This document shows, piece by piece, positions 38,967 to 57,249 of a stretch of 64,000 bases of DNA (positions are counted from its first letter, which is position 1; each line of letters starts with the position of its first letter). Origin of the DNA: Thalia democratica. Taxonomy: Eukaryota. The stretch covers positions 87,792,001 through 87,856,000 of the forward strand of contig OZ241826.1 of assembly GCA_965202585.1 (NCBI GenBank), read 5' to 3'. The position numbers were made by a program, and so were the translations under genes. Under the pieces are notes generated by a model. That model did not search any database, had not been told where the DNA came from, and saw only the letters and a program-made list of their open reading frames with translations.

Positions 38967-40660
38967 GTTTTGTTTTAAATTAGGTTACGATGTATATTTT
39001 ATTTATTAAAAAAAAAATAAATCCTAGAGTTCACTACGTAAAAATGGTTACAAAACATAATTTTAGTAAAAATTTGTTTATAGGTCCAATAAAGCTCATT
39101 ATAAAATTAGTTAAATTATTTTGATCATTGCTAACAATAAAAAAATAAATTGTATTTCTATTGAAATGAAGTCAGAAAACTAATGTGATATATGCTTTTT
39201 TTTATCAATCTTATAACTTTTTTCTTTTAAACTTTATATGCATTTTTAATAGATTGAGTGAATCTTGCTTACGCTTATAATTTGTAAAATTATCTTAGTA
39301 ATTTTTTTTATATATATAAGAGTTAAATATATTATATGAACTTAAACGTGTAAAGAGAATTTTCTTGCCAACATACTTAATAGAATTCTTAAAGTTTATT
39401 AATTTAAAAAATAATAATATTTTAGTTGTTAGTTTCGAACTAAGTTTTTTTTTCGCACTATTTTGCTTCTCGTACAAAACTTCATCATACTTTGTTTTTT
39501 CTGTTAAATAATGTTTTTACAATTAATTATTTTCTAGTTTAAACAGCTTATAATTATATGCAAAAGCCTAAATAAAACAACTATACTGTTTTTTATATTT
39601 GTTAAAGTTTGTAAAAAATTATTTAAAATATTTTTTAGTGGGTTCAGTGAATATTGAATTAGTTGATCAAGTTTTATTTTCTGTATATATATATTCAGGA
39701 AAACTTTAGAATTAAGAAAATATTCATCAACAAACTGCATCAAAAATTCGAAAACTTCAACAAATTTAAAATATTGTGGCAATTATTAAATGTTCATAAT
39801 TTTTGTAGTTGAGTTAAAGTATTTTTTTATTTTATGCATTTATACACTTTGGACAAATTAAAAATCACGTCATTATTTTTTTTTTTAATTTGTTTGTTTC
39901 TGTAGTAATAGTTTAAGTACATAGTTCTACTTAAAATAAATAAAGTTTGAAGCACCATGCTCAATTAAAGTATTGTTCCTTTTCTTTTTAATTTATTCAC
40001 CTTGTATAAATACTTAGCAAAGTATAACGTAAATATATATATATATATATCGATATAAATGTATACTGTTTAATGTAAATATATTCTAGTCTTTATGTTG
40101 AGTTTTTAAATAAAAGTTATTTTAATATAACCATCACTTTAAATTTGAAAATTTATAAACATTAATTTTTGATTAATGTACTTTTTTTTAGTCAAGACAG
40201 TCTGAAAAAGCTTTAAACTTAACATTCAAATAAGTTTTAGAGTTAGTTTTAATTTTTCGAAACCTTATAAATTAATACACATTTATTTTTACATAATGTG
40301 CAACAAAAAAATTTAAAGTTTGAAAAATACAAGATTAATAAAACATTTTATTTAAACGTTTATTTTCGCACATGAGTCTAAATAGTTTCTGCAAAACTTC
40401 GAGGTTGTTTTTGTATTAAAGCGTTTTAATTATTTCTGCAATAAAAAAATAAGTAGCAAAACAAAGTTTAAAAATAAAACTTTGCTAATGAACAAAAACT
40501 TAGATTAGTTACATAAAACTGTTAAGTATTTGTTACATCGACGACAAGCTACAGACAAGGAATGTTATATACTTTTCTCTTAAACACTTTAGCACGCACA
40601 ATATATAGATGTTTACTTAGGTGTAAGTATATAATTTTTAAAACTTGTTCTCAGATGCCT

Positions 40661-40732
40661 TCCCAGGTGGTCTAGTGGTTAGGATTCGTTGATCTCACCC
40701 ACGCGGCCCGGGTTCGATTCCCGGTCTGGGAA
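40661..40732 (+). tRNA. tRNA-Glu(CTC), variant or possible pseudogene
   Basis: Acceptor and T arms are intact and followed by a T6 terminator. The anticodon stem has a U30-C40 mismatch and A32. Confidence 0.7.
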
Positions 40733-45069: not shown

Positions 45070-45567
45070 CAATATTATTAACACAACATAGGTTAAAATT
45101 AAAACGCTGAAATTATATTCCAAAAAGATTTCTTCGTTCATATTATATGAATTTATAAAAGAAAATTGCTATTCAAGTTTTTTACTTTCAATTTATTTTA
45201 TAGGTTTACTTAAAGTTGTCGGATTTTAAGATGAAACATAATTTGATTTGTTTATTTCTACATATATCTAGTAAACAAATTTTTCATAAACTTAAATAAT
45301 TGCAATGAGTTTTTTGCTACTTAAATAAACTAAGTTGTGATTTGAAAAATAGAATAATTGTTTTTAAACATAATTTAGATTTTAATAAACAAATAGAACT
45401 AAGAACATAAAGCAACCTTAATAGCAAATCTAATGATAAACGACTGAAAAATATTCATAGTAAAATATATAGAAAATTTGAAATCGATAAACATAATTTT
45501 TAATAACATGAAGTTTAATTTATAAACTTAAAACATTAAAGTATTATTACAGCTTTCTGTTTAAACA

Positions 45568-47838
45568 ATGTCTGATTTTTACAACAACAAAGCAGCATGC
45601 GATGAGTTTTTAACAAGAGTTGTTAACCTGATTAAAAGGAGAGTAAGCAGTCTGAAGGGTGTTTATTCAGTTGCAAGCGACACTGCTAACATCAAGTTTA
45701 AAGAAAGGGGTGGCATTTACAACGGTAGAAGTTACTGCGGAATTCAAATTTGTATCAAGCGGGAAAACCAAGTTCCAATGAGAAGCAATAAACTTCCTTA
45801 TGGATGTTAGTTTATAATTTAAAACCTTAGGTTATACAAGCTTTAAAAATATTAATGTACATTGAACCTTAAAAAAACTTAATATTTATTATATAAAAAA
45901 AAATATTGTTAAAATGTTTTGATAATTTTAATTACCTTAGGTTATTCAAGTTTTTGTAAAGTAATAATGTACATTGAACTTTTAAAACACTTAATATTTG
46001 TTTTTACAGTTTTTTGTTACCAATTGTTTATAGTTCGTTGTTTATTTAATAAATAAAATTGATACTTATAATCAGTGTTGCCGAAGACTAAACCAGGAAA
46101 ACTCAAGATGTTTTGAGTTTTTTTTATAAACTTGATCTGGTTTCGCATTATTTTTGTATATAAAAAACTCGGGAAAGTTAAGGGAATCTCTTGAACTTCA
46201 CGCTTTTTTTTAGTTAAATCAGATTTAGTTAGCTAATTTTGAAAATGTTGTTATGTTATAACTGATTTAGTTTGGAGCTTCATTTAAATAAATTTAAAAA
46301 AAAAAACATTTATATAAGGCTTTGTATATACCAAGGATAACTCAACAAAGTTAACAGTCAGTCATTACAGTTATTATGATCTAAAAAATGGCAACCCTGC
46401 ATAACACCGAGAACATATTTTAATCAAAATGTTCTATTTTAACCACTAAAACACTTTTCTTTTAGACAAAATCAACTAAATGAACATTTACATTTTTTAT
46501 TTATTTTAGGTGCTTATTATCCAGTGTTTCCCATCGTATCCGGCCGGTTGTTAGTGGAAGGATACTATGGTGAGTTGGTTGTGAGAAATGCTGACTGTCA
46601 AGATCCTATATTTCTTTGGAGTTCTCAAGATGAATTGCTTGACAGCATTAAAAGTTTGAACGAAAATTCCAATGTTAGTATTCAAATTAATTAAACTTAA
46701 GTTTGTCTCACAGCACATTATTTAGCTATCAATTTTTTATTTCAAGTAGGATAGATAATTCAACCAGGGAGTATAAGATATATATATCAAGCAGTTAAAT
46801 GTATATTAAGCTAATCTATACTCAACTTTATTACTATAAGTACCAGCGTTTTCCAAATGCTAATAATTTAAAAAATTAAAACTAGTTGAGGTTTTAAAAA
46901 ACAATAAGAAATAAAAAAAATTAACTAAACCTACGACAAACGACAACAGCATTTAAAACAACCTACGACCGGTTTCTTTTTTATCATCAATTAAAAACAA
47001 AAATAAAAATCACTATTCAATTTTTGTACTGTAAATTTGTGCTTATTAGAATGCATTCGAAGTAAAATACAACTATACTTAATAGTGTCTTTTAAAGAAA
47101 AAATCCAACACTAAGATTAATAAAAATTTTGTTATCAGCAAATATCATTGCAGTTTTCTTCTGACAAACCTGATTTTTACAACGACAAAGAAGCTCGCGA
47201 TAATTTTTTAAAGGAGGTTCTTGACAAACTCCACTACGAATTGAACATTCCGGTTTTGGTGGATTCTGAAAATAACTTTGTTGGCACTTATCTAGTTGCA
47301 AGCGACATTGCTAACATAAGGTTTCTCGAGAAGGATGGAAGCTACGACGGTAGAGGCTACTGCGGAATTCAAATTTCTATACTGTCAAGATTCCAAGCTC
47401 CTGTGAGGAGCAAGAAGTTTCATAATGAGCGTTAGTTAAGTTTTAATTGATAATTTAATGTTCGGTATCATAAGGTGTTAAAAAGTAAAGATATACGTAG
47501 ATTTTTTAAATAAAAACTTTAGTTTGAAAAACAAAGCTGTTTTTTTTAACTATTGTTGACTTTTTTTGTCCCCAACAGTCGCTAGTTGTTTTTATGTTTG
47601 AAGTAAATTTAAAAAATACCAACTTTTTAACTAACAATTTTTATTCAAAACAAAACCAGCTAAATAAACATTTACTTTAGGAACTGCCTCAGCGTTTCCC
47701 GTCATATCTGGCAGATTGTTGACTCGTCGCCTTGGGTATCAGGAGTTCGTTGCGAGGGAAGATAGTCAAGATCCATTTTTCCTGTGGACTTCTTACGAAG
47801 ATTTAATTGAAAAAATTAGAAAGTTGAATGAAAATTGA
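45568..47838 (+). CDS. Uncharacterised 278-aa protein with two tandem ~135-aa homologous domains. Exons 45568-45805, 46510-46673, 47154-47430, 47681-47838
   Basis: All three introns begin GTTAGT and end AG, with phases 1, 0, 1 joining in frame. The halves share DFYN.K.A.D.FL, G.Y.VASD.ANI.F, G.Y.GR.YCGIQI, P.RS.K, FP..SGRLL and QDP.FLW, with an intron at the same position and phase in each half. Codon-like GC enrichment over the flanks. Confidence 0.8.
46073..46399. mobile_element. Decayed CAGGGTTGC-family MITE in intron 1 of the tandem-domain gene
   Basis: CAGTGTTGCC ... GGCAACCCTG termini. Confidence 0.55.
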
Positions 47839-49140
47839 TGAAGTAAACCTGATTGTAATATGACGTTATATGTGATTATATGTTGAAACTTTAAAACTAA
47901 TTAAGTTTTAATTATAAACTTGATTGTTAATTGGCAGTATTTAAATGACAATATATATTCAAAATTAATTATTATGCATTTAGTCTACTTTTAACAAACG
48001 ACAAATTATAGCAAAAGCAAGTAATTTTTCAGTTGATTTAGTATGTTACAAATATTTATTTCTCATTTATTTACTACTGTGCCTAAGTTGCATTTTATAC
48101 AGTAATAAACCTAGAATTAGAATATAGTAGTTTTCCTTATCAACGTATATTGTATGCAATCCGTACGTTTAAGCATTTTCAAGTAATCCCATGTGTGTAG
48201 CAAAAGTTTTCTATTCAGACAATTTCTAAGTGTTAATGAAAGTAGTTTTGAAGAAAAACTTTTCAAATTTATAGTTTAAATATTTACTTATTTTTTGATA
48301 ATAAACAGAACATAAAAGCATTGCTGAGCAATGAGATTGATTTTATTTTGTTTTTGATTTACTAACGGCTTCAAAACATATGAAACATAATTCGGTTTTT
48401 TTTTTATAGTTTTTTTATTTAATTTATTTTTTATTTATTTCTGCTTTTTTCATTAGCTTTTGTGTTGTTTTTTTAATGTTAAAATTAGTTTTAATCAGGT
48501 TAACTTAAAAAAAAACGATCCTAAAATAAAGTATACTTCAAACTTTAAGCTGCTTAAAAAGTTACGTAGATTCAATTTAAAAAATACTTGTTTAAGCTTT
48601 CAAAAATATATGCACTATAATTTGTTGTTTTAAAAAAACTTTTGCGTAATTTCTTACAATATTATGTAATAAAATTTAAAAAAAATTATTCGTTAAAAAA
48701 GATAGGAAAAAGATAGTGATCTATTTTTTAATTAATAACTTATATATAAAAGTAACTATTATAAAATAATAAAAGTATATATTTATTAAAGTAACTACAA
48801 AAATAATTGTAAATAACTTTTATATAAATAAATAAAATACATTATTTAGACATAACCTTCAAATTAGTTTCTTTTTACTGAAAAGATAAAATACATTTAA
48901 AATAATTTATACCTAATAAATTTACACCATGAGTAAATATCCAACCGTTTTTCCGTAAAAATTTTTAAGATTTGTTTTGTTTTAGTTTTGTTTTAATTTT
49001 AGATACAACTGAAGAGTTTTTGCATCATTTTTCTTTCTAATAAACTTCTTTTAAGGGTTATTCCTAACGAACTGTGAAAACAGATAAGATACAATAAAGT
49101 TAATAAGCTGGTTTGATTAGTGAAGATAAAAACGAATGTG

Positions 49141-49680: not shown

Positions 49681-51418
49681 GTATTTATTTTAAATCGTGT
49701 GTTGATGTAGATTAAGTTTATTTTAAAAAATAATAACATTTATCATAGAGTTAACTACGTAGAAATAGTTACCAAACAAAATTTAAGTTATGATTACTTT
49801 GTAGTTCCAATAAAGCTCATTATAAAATTAATTAATTTACTTTAAGCAATACAAACAATGCAAAATAAAATTGTATTTTGATTGAAATGAAGTCAGCAAA
49901 CTAATGTGATAAACATTTTGCTTCTTTCGATCTTACAATATTTTTAATTATAAATATATTTTTACTAGAGTGCTTGAATCTTGCTCACATTTACTATTTA
50001 ATAATCTGTTTAAACTATTGTAGATTTTTTATTCAATAACAACATATAATATGTGCTTTAAATGTATAAATAGAGTTGTCTTGTCGACATATTTACTAGC
50101 TTTTTTAAAGTTTAATAGATAAAAAATAATATTTTAGATAACTGTTTGTTGCTCAAATTTTTTAGTTGTTAGTTTCGAATTAAATTATTTTTTGCACTGA
50201 TATGCGTCTTGTACAAATCTTCATCATACTTTGTTTTTGTTTTTACTTTTAACTTATATTTTTCACATTCAACTCTTTCCGAATTTAAACAGCTGATGAT
50301 TATCTGCCTGATCTAAACAAATGTATGAAGCAAAAGCTAGTATTAAAAACTGTACTAACTTATTCTATTAGTTAATTTTTGTAATAAACTAATCAACAGC
50401 TTTTTAAGTTGGCTCAGTAAAAATTGACTTCGTTAATCTAATTATGTGTTAGGCTTGTGCTTGAAAGGGTTTTTATAAAATTTGAACAAAAGAAAAATTC
50501 AAAAAAAATCTGTTTTATGTAATTTTTCAATAAAAATAATTTTAAAATTTTGTGATCAAATATTCTATGTTTTTAACTTTAGTTGTTAACTTTAAGAAAT
50601 TTTATATTTATGCATTTCTACGCTTTTGACTAAAATTAAAATCACTTCTTATTTTTTTTCTTTAATTTGTTTGTTCCTGTGTTAATGATTTAAGTATTTA
50701 GCTTTACTTAAAAGTAGCTAAAGTTCAAAACAAGAAGCTTAATTAAATATTGTTCTTTTTCTTGTTATTTTTATATAGTTTTGGAATGAACTTTTTATAA
50801 TGTTTATACGTAAACATACTTTTATTGAAAACATATTTTTATACATTTTTATGTAAAATATTTCAAACTAAAACCATTGTATTATAAGCATTATTTTCAA
50901 TTAGAAAATATCTAAAAGTTTTTTCGATTGTTGTACTCTTTTTAAAACCATATAATTTAAAAAAGTTTAAAACATGACATTAAGTAGTTTTTAGAATGAG
51001 TTTTAATTTTTATTAAAAAGTTAGTAAAAAAAATTTTCATATAAGTCAATACACATTTATTTTAAAGAAATAGTACAACAAAATGTTTTAAAATTTCAAA
51101 AAATACGCAAGAATAATTGAATATTTTTTTTTTAAGCTTTTAACAATTTTTCACTTAAAATTAAGTAGTTTCTAAACAACTTCATGGTTGCTTTTGTATT
51201 AAAGCGTTTTAATTATTTCTATTATTTCTGCTACTAAAAAAATACAAAAGCAAAAGAGAGTTTTAAAATAAAGATTAGTTACATAAAACTGTTACATCGA
51301 CGACAAGCTACAGACAATGAATGTTATATACTTTTCTCCTAAACACGTTAGCACGCACAATAGATAGATGTTTACTTAAGCGTTAGTATATAAATTGTAA
51401 AACTTGCATTCATACTTT

Positions 51419-55312: not shown

Positions 55313-57249
55313 TTAAAGACGAGGAACTGTGATAGCAGAAAAGCTGGTGAGATGTTTCGTTGGTTCGCTAGGTTTTTCACACCACTCACCCTTTACTGTA
55401 TCGAAGCAAAACATACTCGATGAACCTTTAAAATAAGTATAAAGTTTGCGTCCAACACTAAAGACTGCAAATGGTCTATTTGAAGTACTGTCGTACAGGC
55501 TGAATGATGGTTTAAGAACAGCGAATTTTTTAGAAGTAGAATCATAAACTTCATTGATATAAGTTCCTCCTGCGATGACATACAATTTATTCTTAACTAC
55601 AACTGACTCATGGAGACATCTTGAATAGTTCATAGTTGGAAATTCTGTCCAAGTGTCGTCTATTGGGTCGTAAGCTTCAACTGTATCTATTGTTTGATAG
55701 TTGTCTTCATCGTAATAATTGACAAAGTTAACAAACTCAAGGCCTGTATAGTGCTTGCCACCAGATACGATGATTTTCTCTTCAAAAACGCATGCAGCAG
55801 GATTTTCTCTTATTTCGATCATCTTTGATTTGTGCTTCCAAGAGCAACTGTACGTATCAAACTCTATACACAAGTCTCTTTCAGTATGACAGTCATCATA
55901 ACCTCCGAACAAATAAATTTTATCCATGAAACCGCATACCGCATAACAATAGTAGTCATAGTCATTTATATCTTCTATATTTGCTACTACTTTGCACGTT
56001 TTCGCAAGATGGCTGTACATTTCTACTTCTTTTACGATAATTCTATTCGACGAGTTACTATCTGGGACATCATTACCACCAAAAATGTAGACATTTCCTT
56101 TGAGATAAACCACTTTAGAGTTATAACGTTTTTTCACTAATGAAGAAACTATTTCTGAACTGTTAAAGTGGTCGGAATTCTTTATTCGCAGTACTTTGTT
56201 ATCAACAACTTCATCAGCTTTTTCCACACCCCCAAAATACAAAATGTCAAATGAATCGTGACCGCAGCATCTTGCTGTGAAAAACGTGCTCGGTTTATTC
56301 CTATAAAAATCAAAGTTGCCTTTCAAAATTTCATTTACGACCGCTAGGGAATCTTTGTTCTTTCTAAAACAGCTCTGTTCAGTTAAAATAGTTTTTAAGG
56401 TTTTATCTTCTAACAGTGAAAGACGTATTTCTTGTAGAAGCATTTTTGAAAACTTTCCTCTTTTTATAAAGTTGTATTTAATCCATTTATCAACAGCTTC
56501 GTAAACTTCAATCTCAGTTGTAACTAACAAACTTGATCTAGAAATAATTTCTTTAAGAAGATTTACTTCCAATTGCAAAAAGCTGTCTGTCTCTGAAATC
56601 ATCAAAAAACGACTATCTATGTATATTAAAGCGTCTTTACTCGAAGAACAAAACATCTTTAAAAGAATGAGATACATGCGAAAGTCTTCAGGACCTATTT
56701 TATCTTTGAGACATTTGACTAGTTTTTGTTCTTCATTGACGTCTAAAACTAATTTATTTAGCTGAATGGCTTGGACGATGTAAAGCTCTTGTAGTGTAAC
56801 TTTTCCTGAAAAAAATATTCAAAAAGGTTTGACATTAATTTACAAACCAGTAGTAATAAGACTAGTTTTATAGTATTGGGTAAAGAAAAATTAGTAACAT
56901 AGGTTTACCTAAACTAACATTTTAAAAAAACAAAATATTTACTTATAAACTGTAAAAATGTAGTTTATCAATTGTTTTTAAACATAACAATTTCACTTAT
57001 TCTAAACAAACTTGGATAGGAAAAGTCTTTGCTAGCTTTTGAGTATTTAATGGCATTCTCCAATGTTTTCTTCTGTTGCGCTTTTGTGATACATTTCTCA
57101 ACAAAAGTACAAACTTCAAGTTTATTAGCATTATTGCTTAGGTGTTCAGTTTTCAGAGTATCTTCTAGTTTAATTTTTTTAATACCAGCTGTTATCTTAT
57201 TTACATCTCTCAATAAGTATGATTTAAGCTTTAAACCTTTTTCACTCAT
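55313..57249 (-). CDS. KLHL-like BACK + Kelch-repeat protein; main exon 56805-55313 is intact, upstream BTB-like exon (from 57249) is doubtful
   Basis: BACK motif FLQLEVNLLKEIISRSSLLVTTEIEVYEAVDKWI and IRLSLL; Kelch GG motifs YFGG, YIFGG, YLFGG, VSGG and VIAGG with Y/W-terminal strands. The acceptor at 56806-56807 opens a 497-codon frame. The BTB-terminal INYIFT(G) near 56950 is out of frame with the ATG at 57249. Confidence 0.8.

Follow-up and report, generated by a model that had tools for sequence, protein, structure and literature searches.

We analyzed a 64,000-nucleotide (nt) stretch of Thalia democratica DNA (assembly GCA_965202585.1, contig OZ241826.1, forward-strand positions 87,792,001 to 87,856,000), referred to below as the window, and found on its plus strand, at 45568-47838, a four-exon gene that is probably a fusion of two tandem paralogs of a lineage-restricted two-exon gene. 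The upstream paralog (unit 1) consists of exons 1 and 2 (E1 and E2) and the downstream paralog (unit 2) of exons 3 and 4 (E3 and E4). Comparison and logic argue for the splice that would join E2 to E3 (46673/47154), and we regard it as likely, well short of certain. An earlier description made from the letters of this DNA alone (the sequence-only reading) had proposed that the four exons are spliced to give one protein. Its coordinates and sequences are correct, and one spliced protein is the only reading we found in which unit 2 is translated.

The locus contains four open segments separated by introns with canonical GT..AG boundaries in phases 1, 0 and 1, and the hexamer GTTAGT is the donor of all three introns. 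Joined in frame, the segments form a coding sequence (CDS) of 837 nt, which encodes 278 amino acids (aa; ~32 kDa, isoelectric point (pI) 6.8). The GC content is 39% in the exons as against 23-24% in the three introns (23-33% in the window overall). Unit 1 (134 aa, pI 8.6) and unit 2 (144 aa, pI 5.5) are paralogous: in a tblastn comparison of unit 2 with unit 1, the N-terminal exons were 44.6% identical (E = 5.9e-18) and the C-terminal exons 51% identical (E = 1.5e-12), and both units are interrupted at a homologous phase-1 intron position. Retention of intron 2 would extend unit 1 by VSIQIN up to a TAA at 46692-46694, giving a 140-aa one-domain form. We found no signal peptide or transmembrane segment; the N-terminus is polar, and the maximal Kyte-Doolittle value over 19 residues is 0.94. 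The 278-aa product would be a soluble protein with two diverged copies of a ~135-aa orphan domain. The sequence-only reading had anticipated each of these features, namely the 278-aa open reading frame (ORF) in four exons, the tandem duplication, the 140-aa form and the absence of signal peptide and transmembrane segment, and all of them stand.

A six-frame search of the organism's own 802-Mb assembly gave 26 exon matches, and eight unit 1-unit 2 pairs share the same order, orientation and intron positions. What had been described as one hidden gene is in fact one of at least eight copies in a birth-and-death cluster, accompanied by single-domain paralogs, each of which has retained an ATG and a stop. 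Five of the eight pairs are fully open (the window copy, L021, L022, L023 and L024), and three (L025, L026 and L027) have stops or frameshifts in both units. Intron 2 ranges from 453 to 1524 nt across the eight copies, with its donor and acceptor conserved. The single-unit genes comprise type C, usually located 4-6 kb downstream of a pair, and two genes on chromosome 4 (contig C4); fragments of the family were also present on contigs C2 and C10. Three pairs and two type C genes lie on a 232-kb scaffold, C15, where they are inverted and mirror part of the C1 cluster (C1:87.34-88.00 Mb). C15 may be an unplaced or alternative-haplotype copy, and the count of eight loci could include allelic duplicates.

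Both kinds of single-unit gene, type C (MSSAQPDFYG.., e.g., G000:C15:93685 and C1:87862061) and the chromosome-4 genes (MSTPPPDFL..), encode the domain in two exons with the same phase-1 intron position. They share with the window gene the core motifs D-x-A-N-I-x-F, G..Q/R-I, S-G-R/K and F-x-W-x-S and are 45-50% identical to unit 2, but differ from it in having one domain each, an ATG of their own 15 nt after the acceptor and a TGA of their own. Their design is uniform: an acceptor (attacag or attgcag), 15 nt, ATG, N-terminal exon, phase-1 intron, C-terminal exon ending in ..LN.N, TGA and a flank of the form GTAAACC..ATATGACG. Directly after the stop, GTAAACC followed by ATATGACG(TCA) is seen at 47839-47868 of the window, in L023 (from 9271), in L024 and in L028, and the flank of type C genes additionally contains a perfect TGACGTCA palindrome, which is CRE-like.

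In the fused pairs, this design is divided between the two units. Unit 1 keeps the start (acceptor, 15 nt, ATG) and lacks the conserved 3′ flank; where the paralogs stop, it continues with the sense codons TCC AAT and then immediately GTTAGT. Unit 2 keeps the stop and the conserved flank, and its opening codons, TTT TCT TCT, align with the paralog starts ATG TCT TCC and ATG TCC ACG (MSS/MST). Loss of the stop upstream, loss of the start downstream and a donor and acceptor that are both in phase 0 recur in the eight copies and in the sister-species contigs described below. In a fusion, the stop of the upstream copy would thus have been replaced by two sense codons and a phase-0 GTTAGT donor, the downstream copy would have lost its ATG, and the old acceptor of the latter, having gained a partner donor upstream, would have been turned to use in cis. 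Failure to splice intron 2 would still yield the 140-aa form with one domain.

The same four-exon layout could be rebuilt in a relative from three overlapping Tara Oceans contigs (L060, L059 and L035). These contigs are ~71% identical in DNA to the locus through both exons and introns, and this genome contains no closer copy. The relative's unit 1 has the acceptor, 15 nt and ATG (L060), and its E2 ends in NEN-CK, followed by GTTCGT and, three codons on, a stop; its unit 2 follows ttgcag with CTT or TTT, without an ATG, and all of its exons are open. We estimated ratios of nonsynonymous to synonymous divergence (dN/dS). Among the five intact copies of this genome, whose reading frame of 278 codons is uninterrupted in 24%-GC DNA, unit 1 had a dN/dS of 0.13-0.86 and unit 2 one of 0.25-0.59, with intron divergence about equal to dS. 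Between the species it was 0.64 and 0.82 for unit 1 and 0.32 for E4. Both units show some coding constraint, and the high between-species values indicate that the family evolves fast.

We then considered how unit 2 could be translated. There is no in-frame Met codon anywhere in E3 and E4, as the sequence-only reading had noted, and its further point, that the phase-0 GTTAGT donor ending unit 1 keeps unit 2 in frame, agrees with the phase-0 acceptor of E3. Leaders that end in AUG, and could thus supply a start, occur in some phyla. This genome contains 358 copies of the 16-nt Ciona-type leader with GT directly after it (198 forward, 160 reverse), compared with 0 copies of a reversed control, and we therefore conclude that the host is a tunicate that trans-splices. 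As a separate test for a tunicate, a GH6 cellulase domain was sought, and this search was as silent as its control. The published Ciona 16-nt leader contains no AUG (Satou et al. 2006, PMC1488885), which rules out a leader-derived AUG for unit 2. A trans-spliced leader would most likely explain the acceptor found 15 nt before each family ATG and, as far as sequence can tell, would most likely rule out unit 2 as an independent cistron, since every ATG in an mRNA composed of leader, E3 and E4 is out of frame and opens an ORF no longer than 23 aa. The window's own site of this kind (45551..45567) is probably a spliced-leader trans-splice site, or else the acceptor of an intron in the 5′ untranslated region (UTR). 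The leader-GT copies, which probably include spliced-leader RNA genes, are found, for example, at C1:11705994 and in a regular tandem array with ~15,085-bp spacing at C26:7129-84046.

A phase-0 mini-exon (ATG..GT) was sought in the 480-nt intron 2, and none was found. Given that unit 2 is without a Met codon, the leader without an AUG and intron 2 without such a mini-exon, entry from E1-E2 is the only canonical route by which unit 2 could be translated. Introns 1 and 3 must be spliced because an intronless relative, P0008 (see below), has the N- and C-terminal parts of the domain in one chain. This lends credibility to the donor of intron 2, whose hexamer is identical to the donors of introns 1 and 3.

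Several results weigh against the fusion. Most of the eight copies are recent duplicates, so that their mutual conservation is weak evidence alone, and, judged by what is usual in metazoans, the donors at the junction are weak, with T at +3 and a base other than G at -1 (GTTCGT in the sister species). Run searches for the locus returned three runs of unrecorded type and no RNA run containing it. Introns and exons were covered alike in the three runs, and GT..AG splice joints were absent; these runs are therefore genomic and mute on expression. No annotated or transcript-derived 278-aa protein spanning the junction was present in protein sets of 5.8 billion and 1.84 billion sequences, and no joined E2-E3 sequence in the JGI metagenome contigs; a search of the genome for a processed E2-E3 retrocopy gave only two AT-rich chance matches with three mismatches. 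Finally, E3 had a between-species dN/dS of ~1.0 (Nei-Gojobori method); that unit 2 is constrained is therefore argued chiefly from its uninterrupted frame, its conserved motifs and the dN/dS values within the genome.

These points could be accommodated if the locus held two separate genes: a functional unit 1 (140 aa, stop at 46692) and a unit 2 that is a start-less relic or part of a 3′ UTR or non-coding RNA. The missing ATG of unit 2, the E3 dN/dS of about 1, the decay of three of the eight loci and the failure to find an RNA run with the junction all fit such an arrangement. We nevertheless consider it unlikely. A relic would hardly have stayed open over 144 codons in five copies, with its exons open in the sister species as well, in 24%-GC DNA that is prone to stops; nor would it be expected to show a within-genome dN/dS of 0.25-0.59, to keep the family-wide core motifs or to retain an intron with GTTAGT..AG in phase. 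Moreover, unit 1 bears the matching change, a stop position that is read through with a phase-0 donor exactly there, and in the three decayed copies both units are damaged.

It is more improbable still that the locus works as an operon, with the leader added at 47153/47154 and unit 2 translated alone. Operons are known in Ciona (PMC1488885), the genome contains a leader of Ciona type, and an acceptor stands just upstream of every family coding start. However, with neither an AUG in the leader nor an in-frame ATG in unit 2, such an mRNA would give no more than 23 aa unless initiation occurred at a non-AUG codon. The gap of 480 nt (453-1524 nt in the other copies) also contrasts with the <100 nt of Ciona operons, and the otherwise unpaired donor upstream favors cis-splicing (PMC1488885). 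An unrecognized coding 5′ exon, located upstream of unit 1 or non-canonical, that starts unit 2 independently of E1-E2 is the least probable alternative, to be given hardly any credence: it is true that an additional sequence appears to be spliced to all family genes 15 nt ahead of the start, but the 480-nt spacer offers no phase-0 ATG..GT candidate, the upstream part is non-coding in the paralogs, where the ATG follows the acceptor, and the lost stop and new donor of unit 1 would be left unexplained. We thus favor the cis-spliced fusion.

Judged by sequence searches, the ~135-aa domain is an undescribed family, a real orphan. The sole Pfam match of the four exon peptides was RIM2a_ZnF, whose 15 bits fall short of the cut-off of 27, and when 30 members were scanned singly, no Pfam family was matched by more than one member and none at the gathering cut-off. 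PHROGs and PDB sequence searches gave no significant match for any of the 30 either, and when exon 3 was used for a feature search in the ESM Atlas, the score stayed under the recognition threshold. An exhaustive HMMER search of 1.84 billion representative proteins returned, as real matches, four exon-sized ORFs and P0008, all of them on marine metagenome contigs. A word-based search with exon 3 found only one exon-sized ORF, on an ENA metagenome contig, and a word-based search with an alignment led by P0008 and a length range of 174-553 aa found only exon-sized ORFs and P0008. The sequence-only reading had recognized no family, and the Pfam, PHROGs, PDB and HMMER searches likewise yielded no described one; as for taxonomic spread, which it had suggested following up, the relatives come only from marine metagenome contigs, with no NCBI or UniProt source. 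The further hits P0005-P0007, P0009 and P0010 are long repeat proteins in which a motif of ~24 residues was matched many times, and we treated them as spurious. One of them, P0005 (1372 aa, E = 2e-10), has at least ten repeats of ~50 aa with ..GGDKANIRFEHGT.NSDGRY.., resembling D-T-A-N-I-R-F..Y-D-G-R of the family; its score is owed solely to this recurring short motif, and the likeness is probably coincidental.

P0008 is a 316-aa ORF on the Tara Oceans contig L032, with a profile E-value of 2.3e-5 and 26-40% identity to the window exons. Like the window units it contains the whole domain, here with the N- and C-terminal parts in one uninterrupted chain; it differs from them in being intronless, in having one domain and in carrying in front ~140 disordered residues that come from another tandem family of this genome. 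That family (L037-L046; C1:86733391-86741456, C1:87075933-87082481 and C1:31958931-31966196) forms tandem arrays of intronless ORFs of ~220-250 aa, each with a basic N-terminus, an S/P-rich middle, an acidic C-terminus and a conserved ..ISGYNVRGVTTDCYGPEELQSLTGDTDDEQ.. motif. These ORFs align with the first 150 residues of P0008 at 39-48% identity, have no Pfam match and do not adjoin the orphan domain.

Across the family, the invariant residues of the N-terminal exon are, in unit-2 numbering, F8, A14, F18, D51, A53, N54, I55, F57, G66, G71 and I74, and the C-terminal exons share S-G-R/K and F-x-W-x-S..L-I. The Cys of the Y-C-G motif is replaced by Y in the chromosome-4 paralogs L029 and L030 and by R in P0008, P0002 and P0011-P0015. 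An AlphaFold2 model of P0008 residues 143-278, built with the family alignment, had a mean predicted local distance difference test score (pLDDT) of 76 and a predicted template-modeling score (pTM) of 0.68, and consists of a long N-terminal helix, ~7 antiparallel strands and a C-terminal helix. From this model of a relative with 26-30% identity, the domains of the window protein are predicted to share a helix/antiparallel sheet/helix fold. It appears to be a generic two-layer alpha/beta sandwich of unplaced ancestry, with all fold matches of the model within the background of the tools. The comparison by AlphaFold and Foldseek that the sequence-only reading had proposed, run here on the P0008 domain, thus gave matches at background level only. 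Its suggestion of a catalytic or ligand-binding site did not hold up: the Cys varies, the invariants are mostly a hydrophobic/Gly core plus D-x-A-N-I-x-F, and the fold is generic.

The best Foldseek match of the domain model in the PDB was Atg10 (4gsk; E 0.024, probability 0.90, template-modeling (TM) score 0.35, root-mean-square deviation (rmsd) 6.6 A), which has the E2-like/UBC-RWD fold. Kinship with ubiquitin-conjugating E2 or Atg10-like proteins was rejected on the TM score of 0.35 and the lack of a conserved catalytic Cys. Foldseek matches among the AFDB clusters reached a TM score of at most 0.51, and Atlas rows at most 0.57. With VIA-align, for which the stated background is Z = 7-8, the C-terminal domain of the Mediator subunit Med17 (Med17C, 4h62_Q) scored Z 7.5 (rmsd 5.1 A over 103 residues) and CyaY (4hs5_A) Z 7.0 (rmsd 3.0 A over 86 residues). 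Frataxin/CyaY and the Med17 C-terminal domain have the same helix/antiparallel sheet/helix layout, in structure only; with Z at background, no sequence similarity and 14% identity of the aligned residues, these matches do not speak for kinship or a common function with either.

The domain is soluble and shows no catalytic-looking invariants, the genes are tandemly amplified with pseudogenes among them and evolve fast, the fused copies have opposite net charge, and one relative, P0008, carries a basic/acidic disordered region joined to the domain. For these reasons we tentatively suggest, as a guess that may well prove wrong, that the protein evolves rapidly, resides in the cytosol or nucleus and serves as a protein-binding module, a single-chain pseudo-heterodimer and not an enzyme. 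The pseudo-dimer idea gains no support from modeling: a homodimer prediction with two copies of the P0008 domain scored 0.00, with a pLDDT of 55-58 for its own fold, and weighs neither for nor against the idea.

The coordinates of the gene are collected in the table. In the surroundings, a 194-nt direct repeat is present at 38997-39190 and 49718-49911 (80% identity, period ~10.7 kb), and tRNA-Glu(CTC) genes at 40661 and 51419 belong to this diverged direct duplication, with the fusion gene between the copies, just as the sequence-only reading had placed it. Within intron 2, each of the three DNA-like runs shows a rise in summed contig depth from ~250 to ~4000 over 46898-46991, with many contigs ending or starting at 46975/46976; the segment is the mark of a dispersed repeat that is short and present in very many copies. 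The matching sister-species stretch includes a 44-nt piece with a 91% match at C2:102558037. On the minus strand, 55313-56677 is an uninterrupted ORF of 454 aa, which in the Atlas feature search grouped, at a score of 0.95, with BACK-Kelch (KLHL-like) proteins; it yielded no information on the taxon.

Table. Features of the four-exon gene (positions in the window)
Feature	Coordinates	Strand	Remarks
Acceptor AG (45551-45552) and 15-nt leader up to ATG; use at 45552 predicted	45551..45567	+	ttattacag-15 nt-ATG in 8/8 unit-1 copies
Exon 1 (E1), N-terminal part of unit 1, with ATG	45568..45805	+	donor T-GTTAGT, phase 1
Intron 1, 704 nt, GTTAGT..TTTTAG	45806..46509	+	position homologous to intron 3
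Exon 2 (E2), C-terminal part of unit 1, ending ..LNEN-SN	46510..46673	+	donor AAT-GTTAGT, phase 0
Intron 2, 480 nt, GTTAGT..TTGCAG; putative former intergenic spacer, splicing predicted	46674..47153	+	donor/acceptor kept in 8 copies
Exon 3 (E3), N-terminal part of unit 2, opening TTT TCT TCT (FSS)	47154..47430	+	after ttgcag; donor C-GTTAGT, phase 1
Intron 3, 250 nt, GTTAGT..TTTAG, phase 1	47431..47680	+	
Exon 4 (E4), C-terminal part of unit 2	47681..47838	+	TGA 47836-47838, second in-frame TGA directly after
Start of conserved 3′ flank, GTAAACC..ATATGACG motif	47839..47868	+	common to 3′ ends of type C and chromosome-4 genes; absent after unit 1

Lineage-restricted orphan families are common in tunicates. 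The domain described here is absent from the databases as a described family, and standard annotation pipelines seem to miss the genes that encode it. If the E2–E3 junction is real, the locus cleanly illustrates, in nature, one specific way in which genes fuse, and single-domain paralogs nearby, each with a start and a stop, still represent the intermediate states. More speculatively, and with only a small chance of being right, the gene could be the founding example of an undescribed, fast, birth-and-death domain family of one probably pelagic tunicate lineage, perhaps with a role in conflict or recognition, in which a trans-splice acceptor was captured in cis by a donor newly arisen in the upstream paralog and the resulting outron-to-intron conversion produced a two-domain, single-chain heterodimer. 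For now, its wider importance is limited.

Among the closest known systems is the Ciona operon, in which cistrons have the same orientation and essentially no intercistronic DNA lies between them (<100 nt, typically 0; PMC1488885). As in Ciona operons, the same 16-nt leader is present here, acceptors stand just upstream of coding starts, and the units are adjacent and in the same orientation. In contrast to Ciona operons, the downstream unit has no start codon, the gap measures 480 nt, and an in-phase donor lies upstream of the acceptor. Where an acceptor has a partner donor upstream, cis-splicing is preferred over trans-splicing in Ciona (PMC1488885). Together with the in-phase upstream donor, this rule predicts a cis-spliced fusion, and not resolution of an operon, at the window locus.

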